A program made the translations under genes and the position numbers. DNA of 60,618 bases, filler included, from Hausera hauseri (Eukaryota): the NCBI GenBank assembly GCA_046269625.1. It is 11 parts of 11 records of this genome, joined end to end, with 100 filler letters (N's around TTAATTAATTAA, not from the genome) between each part and the next. Parts side by side here need not be neighbours in the genome. Positions count along the whole stretch, not along the records: positions 4,257 to 10,053 come from JBJURY010187860.1; 10 more parts are not named here. One strand, given 5' to 3'. Below the pieces are notes generated by a model that had not been told where the DNA came from, made no database searches, and worked only from the letters and a program-made list of their open reading frames with translations. Positions 3,691-10,153 of this stretch are shown here, piece after piece; the first letter of the stretch is position 1; the number at the start of each line of letters is the position of its first letter.

Positions 3691-3863
3691 GCCCCCATCG
3701 ATGGAACAATACAAATATCTGTCCGTCCAAACTGCAGAAGTAAAGTCATTTGACGAAAGCAACCGGATCCTAATAGCGACAGCATCTAGATCCAAAATAT
3801 AATCTACAAAAGGCACTGAACAGTTAATATCTAAAGTAAATCGGAAAGCAGTGTTTTATCAAA

Positions 3864-3976
3864 CCCATGTTAATGTACGGCTGCGAATCTTAGAAACTGA
3901 GTAAAAAAATTAGAGAATTCTTTAAAATCAGCAGAGGCGTGGTTTCTCAGGAGAATGTTGAAAATCGCGTGGACAG
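3864..3976 (+). mobile_element. RTE-clade LINE ORF2 C-terminal fragment
   Basis: PMLMYGCES*KL..KLENSLKSAEAWFLRRMLKIAWT matches the RTE post-RT motif P.L.YGCE.W...E.W..RRML.I.W. Confidence 0.7.
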
Positions 3977-4156
3977 TTAGTTAGTCGTCGATAGGCGTTA
4001 CGATCTCGGCTTCATAGCAAACGAGTTGCCCCATAATTGCTCAGCCGCCCGGGCCAGTAGCAGTCACACAGAAAATCGATCACTGTCCCACACGAAATAC
4101 ACTGAAATTCCAATCAGAAGTCTCGGGAAACCACCGCATCGAAAAGCTGCACACAG

Positions 4157-4256
4157 NNNNNNNNNNNNNNNNNNNNNNNNNNNNNNNNNNNNNNNNNNNN
4201 TTAATTAATTAANNNNNNNNNNNNNNNNNNNNNNNNNNNNNNNNNNNNNNNNNNNN
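4157..4256. other. Artificial contig-joining spacer (first of ten)
   Basis: N44-TTAATTAATTAA-N44, with stops in all six frames. Identical spacers lie at 10054-10153, 14563-14662, 20254-20353, 24302-24401, 30427-30526, 35021-35120, 39920-40019, 46289-46388 and 56135-56234. Confidence 0.98.
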
Positions 4257-4409
4257 CACAGTGCATCATGTGTGCTACCGATTGCACCCGGTGCCGTGCC
4301 CCAATAATCAATATTAGGAATATCGGAAATCCGATATTATTGATTTTTGCACACTTGCACATGTGATGCGCACCTGTACTGTGCACCAATCGATGCGCAC
4401 AGATGTACA

Positions 4410-5714
4410 CTATCGATTAGCACTTTGTCCCGATAGATTCGATGAATACTGCAGTGTGCAGCGATTGATTCTTAAAATGTGCAAAAAATGGGCAATTCTA
4501 AAATATCTGAAAATTTTCGGTATGGGATTAGTAACTTCTTTTCTAGAACCGCTTTTTTTATACTGGATTGCGATTAATTTGTTCCCTATGGATTCCCATT
4601 CGGTAATCTGTTTTTGGCGTATTCCTAGTTGCAACGAGGCGTATTTTTCTTCTACTATACCATCCAATACAATGGGAACAATTAAACCGTTTCTCATAAT
4701 CATCAGGAGTATTGCATTAACATGTATTTTATCTATTCTAAAATCCGGAAGTACTCGCAGTAATTCTTTCATTAAGCCGTTGCTTTTTATAGAATCAGTT
4801 TGAGTGGAAACAGTCATGGAATTAGCAACATTCCATTTTCGTTTTTTTGTTACTTTAGATGGTAGCTCTTCAAATATTGGTTCCATTACTTCAAACTCTT
4901 CTTCCTCATCTGATGTCTTGGGCTTTAATATTTTAGTTTTATTTGCTTTCGCTACTGTGACCTGCACGTCATATCGCCATTGCAATCCTGCAATATATTT
5001 GGTTTCACGATTTAAAATATCTCCAAAATCACTAATATTATTATGAAGATCTGGGGGTACCCACTCATACGTCTCGGTTAACTTTTTGTGAGCTTCCATT
5101 GTGAGCTGTAATCGTCCAATAGAGTTACTGGGAAATTTGGTTAACTTCAAAGATTGTATCATTTGGTTTAAGGTTTTGATTCTATTATCTATGGTAAATT
5201 CGGCACATTTGAGAGAATCAAAAATGGCACAAGTTCTATTTAATGGGATACATAGAGCATTAAAAGTTTTGTGGGCCTCTAATGCTATTATCTTGTATCC
5301 AAGTATATACTTCTCAATCTCCTTTTGCACCAAGTGAGAGTCCATTCCGTTCTCTATTTGTTCCCATGTTATAGTATGTCGAATACTATTTAAGTTATGA
5401 ATGTTCCTTCGAGGTGTAATACTTTGATTAAAGATAACTTCTCCAGATTTTTCCGCTATGATTATTTCGATTGGCAACTGAACCTGCAATCCATTTCATT
5501 TGTTTCCGTAGGCAAACGACACCACAAGGTATCTGGTACTACCGGATTTATGGGTGTATATTATGTTCGGTTCGTCTGACAATTCTCTATTTGTTGGTTC
5601 GACCGTATATTTCAATAGTGACAAGGACGGGAGTTGTCTTTCTTTTCTAAAAATTTCTATCATTCCGATATTTATTATCTCCTTAACGATGAATCGTGCA
5701 TGTTTGGGATCCAC
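4410..5714 (-). pseudogene. Retroelement accessory region with a DEDDh (REX4/ISG20-like) exonuclease fold lacking catalytic residues, copy A
   Basis: RYLVVSFAYGNK*...PIEIIIAEKSGEVIFNQSITPRRNIHNLNSIRHTITWEQIENG...VQKEIEKYILGYKII...FNAL...IFDSLK follows the REX4/ISG20 pattern; internal TGA at about 5496. Confidence 0.6.
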
Positions 5715-6124
5715 AAGATAATTAATTTAGCAGGATTTCTGGCCGGTAATCGTTTCTAGGCTATTCTTTCGTCCTTTTCTCCTCTAAATATCGCCATAAT
5801 TTTCCCAATAGCGACATGTATCGTTATTCCAATGTTATCTCCGGTCCACTGGGGAAATTTAAATGTAGTTTCTAAGTTAAATATTTTAAATAGGAGAATC
5901 TCCCGGTTTCGTTGTTTTCCATATTTCAGTACATTTTGGTATCTTTGTAACTTATTTCATTCTGTCCATTGAGTAATCTAAGTGTGCTATAATCTTGTCG
6001 TAAAAGGAATATGTCATATTCCTTTTGGCGGTACTGAGTCTTCTTATATATTTCTGTTCATCTTTCTTGTTTATCGGAATCTCATCTGGTAGTTTGAAAG
6101 TGTTTTTTCCTCCGAATTTCAGGG

Positions 6125-8070
6125 CTAAATTCGTCGATTGATTGATTCCGGATTCCGGAGCTTGATTACATAAATTTTTGACGTGGTTTTTAGTGCGTCT
6201 TGCTGAGGTTGCGTATCGCGTTTATACTCCTTTAAATCTAATATTATTGGCCGACTAATCAATTTTCTAAAATTCTTGATTATATTCTCATTGGTTATTA
6301 ATTTATGAATTGCATAAACTAATATGATTGGTCCAAGCAACATGCTAGATACGAGTATGTAGTTCATCATATGTTCTTTAAAATAACTACCAAAGTCCTT
6401 ATTAACTATCCTCAAAACCAAGATAGGTACAAGATAAAACGTGGTACGTGTTGCTTCACTTCTACTCTCTTCATTATTTGGTATTGGGCCTGAAATAGTG
6501 TGCTTTCCAATTTCATTTTGTTCGTAATTTCCACTTAACCATAGACACCGGTGATTTCTTCGGATAATAGAGAATTGAGACTCATTAGGCATTTTCTTTC
6601 TACATTTGGGTTTCTTGTCTAATGCGACTAACATCATAAGAATTACACCAATACTTGCTATTATGACGAAAATCCACCAATATTGTAAGATATACGTTTA
6701 GTAGTTCTAGTCGTAGTCGTGGTTACTTTCCATTTTTCATCGTCATCATTGTATCTTATGTGACGGTATTGGTCTATTGCTGGCTTTGTTTTTATGGCTA
6801 AAATTTTTGAGTTATCCGGAGTTTCTATCTTTACTAAATAGTTGGTATCTGGTGTTAGTTTTTCGCAGAATGTTTCGTTCATGTATTTTATTTTGAAATA
6901 TTATCTCAATTCGGTCCGTATAGGGCGTTAATTTAAAATTTATTGGGAATTCTTTCATACATTTTCCATAAAATACATGTCTATTTATTTTTGGTTTCAA
7001 CTTATATGACCGCTGATTTTGTAGGTTGAGCTTGACCTGATTGAACTGATCTTGTGATTTGAGCTTAAGCTGATTGAACTGATTGATCTGATTTCCTCTA
7101 CACTTAATAGTGGACGCCGTCCATAAGTCCGGTGTTATCATCTGTTTTACAGATTTAGGAGAAGTCATAGTCTGCTTGGCGAAAGTTGGGATAGGTGTTT
7201 TTTTACCGAGAAAAGAATTGGAATACGGTAAGAATAAACTCTAATTGAGCGTCTCATTATACGCTGGCGGATTTTGTACCAAATATATGGATATATGGTA
7301 CAACACGAACGAGTGTCGTTTCTCTTAAGATAACAATAATGTGGTTGTGCTATTGATGTAGAAACTGGATCAAACCATATGCTGATTTCGTATTCGCTGG
7401 GTAGTAGTTGCGTGGTGCGGAAATTCATACAAGGAATTTGTGCTGTTAGATTGATACCTGAAATTTCAATACCATGTTCAAGAAATTGAGCAATAAAAGG
7501 GTCAGGTTGGAATACATCGGAAGTTTCTAATATGGTCATCTCCTGATAACTAGGAACATGAAGGATCATATTTGGTTCCCAAATAATAGTATGCGTATCG
7601 TTAGCTTTCAATATCACATAATAGGTGTGAGTAATTATGTAAGTGACGGAACAGCATACGTTATTATGCATCTCAATGATTGTACAAACAGAGATATTGT
7701 GTTTTGATATAAAGACAAAATCGACCGCGTGGTGCATCATTATCCACATGTGAGTCCGAAGGCAAATACTGGGTTTATATTTGTCAATTCGGGCGATCGT
7801 AGCACGTTTAATTAATTCAGTGTTGGTCGCAGGTGTTTTATCGCGATTGGTATCCGCAATAGTTAATAAAAATGCCATAAAAATGAATAAAATGATGCCC
7901 AAGTGTTTATTCAAATTGAGGTGAACTGGGTAACGTTCTGAGGCACTTATATGGTGAGTTTTAAGCAAAGCTGCTATTTTAGGTTCCTCAGTTGGGGGTG
8001 ATTCTAATTCTGTCTCTCGTATAAATTCGTTGTATGATATCGGTGCTCGAGTGACACGTTGAACCGACAC
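6125..8070 (-). pseudogene. Retroelement-encoded membrane protein region (signal peptide, Cys repeats, FN3-like motif, TM helices), copy A, frameshifted
   Basis: Hydrophobic signal HLGIILFIFMAFLLTIA; two C..(F/R)T...C...CC repeats; CEKLTPDTNYLVKIET; a Thr-rich stalk; TM segments. Homologous to 21876-23780. Confidence 0.65.
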
Positions 8071-8100
8071 GATATAGTTCATAATTTTCGGTAGAAGATT

Positions 8101-8573
8101 CATTCGTGGAGAATGCACGAACCATCCAAAATCTACCAATTTCAGATTGTAATCATAATTGATGAGCAAATTTCCATGGTTTACGTCGCGATGTATAACG
8201 CCTTTTAAATGACAATACACGAGTGCTTCACATAGAGTAGCCGATATCTGACCGAACCACGCACACTTAGGGACCAGAAAAATTCGAATATCATCATCAA
8301 ACCAAGTATTTAATTATAAAATATTCTGATGGGATAATTTAGTCATAATATTTATCTCACAAAAACTGAAGTTAATAGAATTATTCTCATAGTATGATTT
8401 TTTGAACATAACCTTCACTGCACAGATGAATCCTTTTTTGATTGTCTCAGCCAAAAACCATGACCAAATTTCCCAGTACCCAACAAACTTCCAACATAAA
8501 AATTATCTAAACTGTAGCTTGAACGTAAATTCTCAGTAACTGACGGTTGAAAAATATCAATATCCAAATTCAT
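8101..8573 (-). pseudogene. Aurora-family kinase 5' fragment (N-lobe to DFG motif)
   Basis: MNLDIDIFQP..YSLDNFYVGSLLGTGKFGH, FICAVKVMFK, EINIMTKLSHQNIL*, LCEALVYCHLKGVIHRDVNHGNLL..LKLVDFGWFVHSP. DFGW.VH.P is Aurora-typical. The fragment has a frameshift, a stop and an internal deletion, and is truncated after the DFG motif. Confidence 0.85.
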
Positions 8574-8620
8574 CCGAATTATATAACAAGTAAATGGCGC
8601 TTTAAAAATTCAAATTCTAG

Positions 8621-8935
8621 TGGAGAATCGGATATAGATTTTTACTGTCAGTGGCTTTGAGTAAACTCCTGTTGTTACCCTTTGCCTTAACAATGGACAT
8701 GTTTTTGTTGAACGTTTACAATGGTTCTGTACTTGTGGACAAAATGAATAAGTACTGGTGGGAATTACGGTATAAATATCCAGGTCTCATACCACCAATT
8801 CCACGATCTGATGATGATTTCGACCCTGATGCCAAATATCACATTGCAATGGGTATTTCTTATATTCGGTACTTTGTCAGCTTCATTCTCCAGTTTCAAT
8901 TTTATGAAGCTATGTGCAATTTGAGTAATCATAAG
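8621..8935 (+). pseudogene. Angiotensin-converting enzyme-like (peptidase M2) internal exon fragment
   Basis: ESDIDFLLSVALSKL..LPF, WWELRYKYPGLIPPIPRSDDDFDPDAKYHI...SYIRYFVSFILQFQFYEAMC are hallmark ACE C-terminal motifs. An AG acceptor precedes it at 8619-8620. No HEXXH exon is present. Confidence 0.9.
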
Positions 8936-8989
8936 TATTGGTCAAAATATGATGATATTTTAATATGAATATTCGACTGTCTCGTTTTT

Positions 8990-9797
8990 TCCCTTAAATG
9001 ACATTATAATTATATCAACACATTTATCATCCAATTTCTTCACGGAATCGGATTCGGGCGACGTTTCCAAATATTTCTGTGCACGAATACTTTCCTCCTC
9101 GAGTTTCTGTTTAACATACATCATATATTTACAGACACCGTGAGTCATGAGGTATTGACAAGTTTCTTTTCGATAAAACTGTTCCGTATGTTCAAGATAT
9201 GCCTTTTCAAATTTCTCTTGATATATTGAAAGCTTCGATTCGGATTTTATCGACAAGTTTACATAAGACTCTCTAACTCCAATCACAAGCTGACTATCTA
9301 TAACGGCACCATTCCGCTCCTCGAGAATAAGTTTCATTGCGGTAGCTTGGAGTTTCTGATTTATTTGTTGGAAAATAGTATTGTTCCATTTATCTAACAT
9401 CATCTTTCGAACAATGCCAATATTTTTATTTCGTTTCTTTGAATTACTGATATTATTTTTACCGGCTAAATGATTATCCAACGAACCAAATGGTTTTGGC
9501 AAATATACACACTGAACAAAAAATTTCTGCCATTCATGAAAGAACGACCGCAACAACGCTGATTCACCTTGGTTTTGTTTTACTCTCTTTTCAGATTCCG
9601 AAATCGATTTAATAATTATTCCTAACGTTTCTTTCCTTTTACTGGCAGACTCTTCATGCCACATCGTCACTATATGAACATTAAAAATGTATCTTGCCAT
9701 TCTCTTTGACTAACATTTTTTGATTTAAAATATTACTTACTACAGCTCGAATTTCAGGCCATTTCTTATCAAAAGTATAATTTTCAACTGCATCCAT
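8990..9797 (-). pseudogene. CUL5: Cullin-5 N-terminal fragment (about 270 codons, one frameshift near 9685)
   Basis: MDAVENYTFDKKWPEIRAVV, EWQKFFVQC.YLPKPF, IVRKMMLDKWN, DSQLVIGVRESYVNL, FEKAYL..TEQFY and RAQKYLET are CUL5-specific. The fragment starts at ATG 9797 and ends long before the cullin homology domain. Confidence 0.9.
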
Positions 9798-10153
9798 TTT
9801 TAGCCTGCCCAGTAGTATCTCCAGCAACTGGTTAAACTGTAGATGCTGCTCAAATCCTCGAGTCGGAAGATCGGGGCCCGCCTATGGACCCGACGCGGCG
9901 ACAACGGACGCCCGGCCGTGCCCAACCAAATGGGCCAAAGGGCACCGGCCGCAGTGGTCACCACACACGCCTTCATACCTATTGGGTCCTTTTTGAATAA
10001 AAAGTGTTTGCGGACGCACATCAACAACTTTGTACGGTCCTTGACCAGTACGTNNNNNNNNNNNNNNNNNNNNNNNNNNNNNNNNNNNNNNNNNNNNTTA
10101 ATTAATTAANNNNNNNNNNNNNNNNNNNNNNNNNNNNNNNNNNNNNNNNNNNN

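Follow-up and report, generated by a model that had tools for sequence, protein, structure and literature searches.

The subject of this analysis is a 1,893-bp insert in the genome of Hausera hauseri (GenBank assembly GCA_046269625.1, 868 Mb in 909,086 contigs). It lies in a window of 60,618 nucleotides, by which we mean the whole stretch of DNA that was analysed, and the part of the window that holds it, positions 4257-10053, is the entire 5,797-bp contig JBJURY010187860.1. The insert is bounded on both sides by the pentanucleotide ACACG, interrupts the integrase tail of a gypsy-type retroelement, and contains pieces of three cellular genes: the 5′ region of CUL5, an internal piece of ACE and the 5′ region of an Aurora-like kinase. 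We regard it as very probably a minus-strand solo long terminal repeat (LTR) from an LTR retrotransposon of the Ty3/gypsy type, with an interior made of the cell-gene pieces. L-numbers below denote other loci of the same assembly; all are on short contigs, and none shows a whole element. The features on which the argument rests are the following, with ORF standing for open reading frame and UTR for untranslated region.

8067..8071, no strand: left copy of the target-site duplication, ACACG; single in the uninterrupted copy L022
9965..9969, no strand: right copy of the target-site duplication, ACACG; single in uninterrupted copies
8072..9964, minus strand: probable solo LTR, 1,893 bp, sense on the minus strand; both ends are family ends in ~30 and 10 other copies
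9845..9968, minus strand: GC-rich 5′ terminal LTR module, family-wide; ~3,500 first-look candidates, 40 scored at 84-93% identity
8992..9827, minus strand: CUL5-derived piece, with ~60 nt UTR-like, ATG at 9797 and codons to about residue 279; Pfam Cullin, PDB CUL5
8937..8989, no strand: 53-bp LTR-family backbone segment between the ACE and CUL5 pieces; 96-98% identity to L012/L013, 92% to L007
8614..8935, plus strand: internal piece of ACE (peptidase M2) matching profile positions 415-509, in antisense relative to the LTR; Pfam, E 1.8e-35
8077..8613, minus strand: Aurora-like kinase 5′ piece, with ~40 nt upstream of an ATG at 8573 and kinase sequence as far as the DFG motif; Pfam, PDB, ORFs
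7165..8066, minus strand: host retroelement, integrase C-terminal frame continued plus downstream ORF, broken by the LTR; ORF reading, paralogue L078
9970..10053, minus strand: host retroelement, integrase tail upstream of the insertion (...GPYKVV...GPNRYEG), truncated by the contig end; ORF reading, paralogues

The segment is a true insertion with a duplicated target in the integrase C-terminal region of a gypsy-type element, because paralogues of the interrupted host have both flanks adjacent and ACACG only once. When each flank was searched separately in the genome, the two were found adjacent, with no insert, in at least 20 other copies of the host retroelement. The closest of these (L022/L078, contig C99988, ~91% identical) reads ...GAACCG ACACG GCTTCAT... 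across the site, and an Integrase_H2C2 domain (E 5.5e-14) lies ~740 bp upstream of it in L078. On the minus strand the frame reads ...GPNRYEGV up to the insert (ORF 9882..10019) and resumes as ...VSVQRVTRAP beyond it (ORF 7165..8220). Thus coordinates, frame and uninterrupted paralogues all bear out the preliminary description, made from the sequence alone, of a 1,893-bp segment between ACACG repeats that splits the integrase tail. The duplication is 4 bp (CACG) if the invariant first T of the LTR family is assigned to the LTR, and 5 bp (ACACG) otherwise.

Within the insert, the presence of fragments of CUL5, ACE and Aurora kinase, as first described, was confirmed by Pfam and PDB matches. Pfam places Cullin at 8963-9700 on the minus strand (E 4.7e-34), Peptidase_M2 at 8651-8965 on the plus strand (E 1.8e-35) and pieces of Pkinase at 8077-8573 on the minus strand. 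All three pieces are pseudogenised. The cullin piece is assigned to CUL5 because a phmmer comparison with the solved chains of the PDB gives E 5e-63 for CUL5, against 4e-20 for cullin-1, the second-best cullin. Residues 46-274 of solved CUL5 align colinearly with the piece, and the N-terminal 48 codons lie just upstream across a frameshift; there is one frameshift, near 9684-9700, and no intron. Other copies of parts of this piece number only 2-4 (L002 at 93% identity, L003/L004 at 88%), and its divergence from the closest, L002, 7% in nucleotides and 12% in amino acids, looks neutral on this comparison of sequences.

The ACE piece has 96% nucleotide identity over 8614-8935 to L020, a longer, frameshifted ACE pseudogene, and 71% amino acid identity to L087, an intact, intronless ACE ORF of 650 aa. 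Homology with L020 and L003 begins at 8614, and both of those copies extend upstream as ACE coding sequence. Hence the splice acceptor that had been proposed for an ACE exon here is not borne out: L020 and L003 are coding upstream of the supposed acceptor, and L087 has no intron. The Aurora piece carries one frameshift (~8418-8454) and one in-frame TAA (8314-8316). In less damaged copies of the family the top solved matches are the Aurora A/B/C kinases, weakly, at E ~1e-4. The portion 8077-8510 recurs in at least 40 copies at 82-92% identity and makes up the 3′ part of LTRs of this family; its final ~30 nt look like a piece of a mitochondrial glutamate carrier. An additional 66 nt present in other Aurora copies was considered as an intron and rejected, as it has no GT-AG borders and lies between short direct repeats, which makes it a duplication or deletion. 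Two more details of the preliminary description need correction: the 3′ tail of the kinase piece is carrier-like, and what separates ACE from CUL5 at 8937-8989 is 53 bp of family backbone and not gene. In the relatives of this segment (L012, L013, L007) the surrounding interior is a different one, and public-run contigs have loose ends at 8937 and 8989 that match the family backbone.

The ends of the insert are the ends of a high-copy repeat family. A search of the assembly for other copies of both termini, which the preliminary description had proposed as a check on mobility, returned many with the same ends and unrelated flanks, ~30 at one end and 10 at the other. The LTR in the window starts TGTGGTG at 9968/9964 (for a duplication of 4 or 5 bp), as does every copy, and ends ...GAACTATA(T) at 8072. 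Its first part is compositionally distinct, with 55% GC in the terminal stretch 9757-9956 and 30-39% in the rest of the insert. The boundary at this GC-rich end is sharp (...GGGCACCAC, then A); the ~30 copies inspected all stop at ...GTGGGCACCAC, then A, and their flanks are unrelated, except for a common one in L048 (=L073), L050 and L051. At the other end, copies of the Aurora portion elsewhere in the family run ~60 nt further than the window does and then stop abruptly (plus-strand view, at the border with TTATTCAATAATTCC...). Read by eye, the extra ~60-nt stretch is a piece of the mitochondrial glutamate carrier (GGGAGMCQITVTTPMELL). Ten copies of this minus-strand 3′ end have ten different flanks; L013, L014/L079 and L006 share one flank. 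The summed depth of public-run contigs, which serves only as a rough guide to abundance, is ~5 over the unique flank, 200-690 over Aurora, 1-50 over ACE and CUL5, and reaches ~23,000 at the GC-rich end. A second solo LTR of 1.7 kb, with both ends and GAAAG on either side, is present at L076. An Rfam scan of 8000-10053 gave no RNA family for the GC-rich end, a 28-bit match to MIR7807 (gathering threshold 90) being taken as chance.

Two further loci show variation in the family. L074 (G000:C126651) has two family LTR 5′ ends in the same orientation, at 2512-2617 and 5991-6179, 3.5 kb apart and with zf-U1 and AAA_11 helicase pieces between them; they are only 83% identical to each other and so are two different LTRs, tandem or nested. 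In L077 (G000:C40444), the Aurora piece is followed at ~4345-4400 by GGIAGIVGVTC..., from the first repeat of the glutamate carrier, in place of the usual GGGAGMCQITV..., and an ancestral LTR may have had a longer carrier fragment.

What adjoins these ends identifies them. A G-rich polypurine tract, ATGGGGGGTGA, lies directly before the GC-rich end in L073, L050 and L077, in the form GGGGGGTGA in L073 and L050 and GGGGGTTGA in L077. On the sense strand the shared flank reads ...GCTTTGCTATGGGGGGTGA immediately followed by TGAGGTGCCCAC..., so that the G-rich tract touches the first base of the repeat. In L073 and L077 the tract is preceded by the 3′ part of pol. The 9.5 kb of L073 (G000:C358820) have, upstream of the tract, RVT_1 (5369-5683), RT_RNaseH_2 (5857-6345), Integrase_H2C2 (6579-6830) and rve (6823-7146), with a GPY/F-like tail after rve, and this order of reverse transcriptase, RNase H and integrase is the Ty3/gypsy order. 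In L077 the pol end and tract are followed by the repeat start at ~1981 and, ~1.8 kb later in the same sense, by an Aurora piece at 3751-4344; it is a 3′ LTR with the layout of the insert in the window.

At the opposite end of the LTR, L013 has TGGTGTCAGAA 2-3 nt after the repeat stops (its flank begins TGGTGTCAGAAAAT...), and L079 (TAGTG...) and L075 (TGGAG...) have the same stretch with one change each at the same distance. L075 is a 5′ LTR with its internal region: a repeat start leads to the site of primer-binding type, then to a leader of ~2.9 kb, and then to a region homologous to L073 2944-6648 that reaches the reverse transcriptase. The genome contains nine exact tRNA-like gene starts GTCAGAATGGCCGAG; as a control for the degenerate tRNA-start pattern, the reversed pattern gave none forward and two in reverse. 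A tRNA with this start would be expected to end ...TTCTGAC-N-CCA, complementary to TGGTGTCAGAA. At L084 (G000:C426585, ~2997, minus strand) another repeat end, ...CTAATCATGAT, is followed by a primer-binding-like site, TGGTGTCAGAAAA, as in the LTR family, which suggests a second LTR family sharing the tRNA primer; L084 also has decayed CUL5 N-terminal pieces.

The interior between these ends varies from copy to copy. Comparison of the LTR in the window with L012 and L013 finds four segments in common and everything else different: the 5′ ~125 nt (87% identity), the 53-nt segment 8937-8989 (96-98%), 122 nt around the Aurora ATG at 8489-8610 (~80%, in L013 only) and the Aurora portion 8077-8510 (89%). 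The CUL5 and ACE pieces replace the backbone on either side of the 53-nt segment. L003 and L004 have 8614-8732 joined directly to 9460-9966, and L002 has 8992-9456 at 93%. About one third of the sampled LTRs share the first ~110 nt of the CUL5 stretch (9735-9844, UTR-like sequence plus the first codons) and diverge at 9735. Other LTR interiors carry a DYRK-like kinase (E 1.2e-14), an AAA_11 helicase (8.6e-8) and a zf-U1 domain (9e-5), and a survey around 27 LTR starts, covering 118 ORFs no shorter than 60 aa and no farther away than 2.4 kb, adds kinesin/KIF9, an HPS5 propeller, a homeodomain and HSCB_C, with no reverse transcriptase or integrase among those 118. The leader takes part as well. 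That of L079 has the middle part of a cullin (6.4e-50) and a DEAD-box piece. That of L073 contains, at 126-2365 and upstream of gag-pol, a near full-length, intronless OGT with TPR repeats and Glyco_transf_41 (E 2e-118) and a few frameshifts, after which a short DEAH-helicase-like stretch can be recognised by eye. Since other LTR copies and the leader carry other gene pieces, acquiring cell sequences is a habit of the family. Contrary to what had been supposed, the joining of the three fragments did not take place for this insertion; together they are one variant of an LTR whose interior changes between copies.

The identification of the insert as a solo LTR thus rests on its sharply bounded ends, which are shared by a high-copy family and lie within a 4-5-bp duplication, and on what the same family ends adjoin, a polypurine tract with pol at one side and a putative primer-binding site with an internal region at the other. 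Of the two alternatives in the preliminary description, a solo LTR built from host exons and moved as one unit, or a gene-capturing element of the Pack-MULE (Pack Mutator-like element) or Helitron kind, this evidence supports the former. LTR integrases typically duplicate 4-6 bp and MULEs 9-11 bp, while Helitrons make no duplication and insert between A and T. A Pack-type DNA transposon (Pack-MULE or Pack-TIR, for terminal inverted repeat) or a Helitron with captured fragments would account for several gene fragments in one mobile unit, and a GC-rich imperfect hairpin (GGCCGTGCCC...GGGCACCGGCC) does lie near one end. However, inverted- and direct-repeat searches of the insert found no terminal inverted repeats joining its two ends; its duplication is 4-5 bp and not 9-11; the Helitron ends 5′-TC...CTRR-3′ have no match on either strand, the sense ends being TGTGGTG... 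and ...CTATAT; and next to the family ends stand pol with its polypurine tract and a putative primer-binding site. We consider a DNA transposon very improbable. Nor does the insert have the character of a processed pseudogene made by a long interspersed nuclear element (LINE), which is 3′-anchored, ends in a poly(A) tail and has a long, variable duplication: in both the CUL5 and the Aurora piece it is the 5′ end that survives and the 3′ end that is missing, and there is no poly(A) in the insert.

Somewhat less improbable, though still very unlikely, is that the insert is a self-contained, non-autonomous retroelement moving as a 1.9-kb unit, or an LTR-only derivative, and not the remnant of a full element. 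Most sampled copies do have unrelated flanks on both sides, and the contigs are too short for full elements to be counted. But an LTR alone, with neither primer-binding site nor polypurine tract, is not reverse-transcribable as a unit, and the same ends are found joined to pol (L073, L077) and to the leader or internal region (L075, L079, L013). An assembly chimera, in which unrelated repeats were joined, has to be considered for an assembly in so many contigs, all the more as the ends of the insert are high-copy repeats. Spanning sequence, which the preliminary description had called for at both junctions, is available at the left one, where a 455-nt public-run contig, possibly from the same sample as the assembly, covers 7800-8150 with no differences. 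None of the 8 pieces listed, of 1,372 public-run pieces, lies at the right junction, 9964/9970. A chimera would not, however, leave the host element exactly reconstituted to the left and right of the insert, together with a 5-bp repeat of a sequence that paralogues have once, and we give this explanation hardly any weight.

The absence of the right junction from the pieces listed is one of several points that weigh against the solo-LTR identification. The window copy is missing ~59 nt near its minus-strand 3′ end. The sequence at that place, TATAGTTCATAATT, resembles both the true terminus TATTATTCAATAATT and the internal site GTTCAGGATT, and we interpret the loss as a deletion, between short repeats, in which the terminus was preserved. 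The 3′ end of the LTR, ...AATA or ...AACA in the family and ...CTATA(T) in the window, is not a clean CA. The 3′ end of the putative primer tRNA was deduced from its start and not read. Finally, no contig holds both LTRs of one element, and the pairing of LTRs was not directly seen. With the insert taken as a solo LTR all the same, the integrase-tail region of an older gypsy-type element, unrelated to it, would have been the landing site of a full element, whose integrase made the 4-5-bp duplication observed there, and recombination between the two LTRs of the newcomer, the standard origin of solo LTRs, would later have removed the internal part and left one LTR behind.

How the gene pieces came to be in the LTR is less clear. 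The LTR is a mosaic, with a conserved GC-rich 5′ end, a conserved 3′ part, and an interior that would earlier have been overwritten by cell-gene pieces (CUL5 from its 5′ end, antisense ACE, and Aurora from its 5′ end fused to the carrier piece), all of which are now evolving as pseudogenes. Our preferred route, to which we give about an even chance, is capture at the RNA level by template switching. Reverse transcriptase copying U3 or the leader would switch to a co-packaged cell mRNA, and on reaching the 5′ end of that mRNA it would run off and be forced to switch back. The CUL5 and Aurora pieces begin ~40-70 nt upstream of the ATG and stop within the coding region, and a forced switch back after run-off would account for the start of two of the three pieces at an mRNA 5′ end. 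The same 5′ anchoring is evidence against retroposition of the LINE type, in which it is the 3′ end that is kept. At the junction of the Aurora and ACE pieces there are 6 nt of microhomology, ATTCAA, and the CUL5 piece of the LTR is continuous across both borders (AG/GT) of L082, an exon-type CUL5 fragment.

Entry of the pieces at the DNA level, by nested insertion, filler-DNA break repair or gene conversion between LTRs, is a weaker but substantial possibility, and it would leave the solo-LTR identity unchanged. At 8935/8937 and at 8989/8992 the joins contain 1-2 nt of filler but no microhomology, which fits DNA-level patching; the closest relative of the ACE piece is a long genomic pseudogene (L020, 96%); and the variants resemble replacement or deletion derivatives of one backbone. 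On the other hand, an mRNA 5′ end is where two of the pieces begin, ~279 codons of CUL5 are colinear and uninterrupted by introns, and many intronless, decayed copies of OGT and CUL3 in the genome indicate RNA-derived copies in general. Three matters count against the RNA route. The ACE piece, antisense and internal, fits DNA-level patching as well. Because the ACE genes here are intronless, ACE cannot separate RNA from DNA capture at all. And L082 may be a poor proxy for the donor or may come from another organism, as it has ~59% amino acid identity to the LTR piece in the overlap, no nucleotide alignment to it and a higher GC content at third codon positions (GC3). The same three properties led us to reject L082, the only candidate and a short exon-type fragment, as the parental CUL5.

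The genomic setting bears on where such copies come from. L083 is an intact, intronless CUL3 ORF of 755 aa, closest to trematode and cestode CUL3 at 56-60% (neodermatan flatworms), and because of this similarity we take the animal to be flatworm-like; ACE similarity is uninformative on kinship, with identities of at most 50% and matches across many phyla. Intronless, decayed copies of OGT (for example C39444, C901892, C577338) and CUL3 (for example C62607, C291058, C93765) stand beside short exon-like matches to the same genes at lower identity (55-77%). These exon-like matches may be the true genes, old donors or a second organism in the sample. GC3 is higher in the exon-type CUL5 L082 and in the ACE ORF L088 than in the AT-rich intact, intronless ORFs of ACE (L087) and CUL3 (L083). 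One of two things must then hold: retro-copies abound in the genome, or sequence from two animals is combined in the assembly.

The interrupted host retroelement has features of its own. Downstream of the integrase tail are three long minus-strand ORFs, at 7165-8066, 6125-6637 and 4410-5489 (~300, 170 and 359 aa), with no Pfam match and with hydrophobic stretches in two of them; they could be envelope-like or an accessory gene. Near the contig start are an 18-nt near-palindrome at 4310-4347 (AATATTAGGAATATCGGA / TCCGATATTATTGATTTT) and a 13-nt inverted pair, 118 nt apart, at 4344-4487, both outside the part that matches L078, which begins at 4882.

Several known systems resemble this one in part. 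In acutely transforming retroviruses a captured oncogene replaces internal coding sequence and is expressed as protein. There, as in the RNA-level route preferred here, a reverse-transcribing element takes pieces of processed cell mRNA by read-through or template switching, but the pieces in this family are in the LTR and leader, truncated and frameshifted, with no sign of maintenance as protein. Pack-MULEs and gene-carrying Helitrons are likewise mobile units full of fragments of several genes in many variants, and differ from the present family in having neither its 4-5-bp duplication nor its polypurine tract, putative primer-binding site and pol partners, and the family for its part lacks inverted ends. 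The nearest parallel among LTR elements is maize Bs1, which carries pieces of three host genes and for which RNA-level capture is the favoured mechanism (PMC13317346). Both Bs1 and the present family amplify pieces of several unrelated cell genes; unlike in Bs1, the pieces here lie within the LTR itself and the leader, the content varies among copies, family ends number in the thousands, and the host is an animal. Other transductions of host genes by LTR retroelements are known, among them many single captures in rice, sorghum and maize (PMC13317346; PMC6431247), but Bs1 was the sole LTR retrotransposon in a survey across maize to contain fragments of two or more genes (PMC2774510). In BARE-2 and Veju, template switching between co-packaged RNAs remodels LTRs and yields new LTR variants (PMC13317346). 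Foreign sequence would have entered the LTR or body by such a switch in our family too, although in those elements the foreign part is another retroelement or of unknown origin, and here it is a series of cell-gene pieces. Burro elements of planarians are giant, gypsy-like, present in thousands of copies and endowed with host-like domains (PMC6431247). Compared by description, they share with this family a flatworm or flatworm-like host, gypsy type, copy number and host-derived content, but their extra domains are in a huge intact polyprotein and those here are non-coding scraps in LTRs and leaders. A limited literature search found no paper describing such gene-piece LTRs, which is weak evidence of novelty. 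Unusual features are the location inside the LTR, the number of different genes, the differences among copies, the abundance and the fact that the host is an animal.

Most documented cases of LTR retrotransposons with captured gene fragments come from plants, and usually involve one fragment in the body of the element. In the abundant animal family described here, the LTR itself is patched together from several genes, and each subfamily has its own set. It is conceivable, though we would hold it only tentatively, that the family is an animal "Pack-LTR", in which the middle of the LTR and the leader have repeatedly been swapped for pieces of cell mRNA, often anchored at the 5′ end, by forced template switches during reverse transcription and the products then spread to hundreds or thousands of sites. 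If the phenomenon is general in this genome, it would offer a natural system for studying the uptake of cell RNAs by reverse transcriptase, it would account for part of the load of intronless gene copies, and many annotated "gene fragments" and exon-shuffled models would be LTR interiors, a caution for annotators. If the Pack-LTR reading is true, LTR-driven sense and antisense transcripts of CUL5, ACE and Aurora could feed small-RNA pathways or seed exons.

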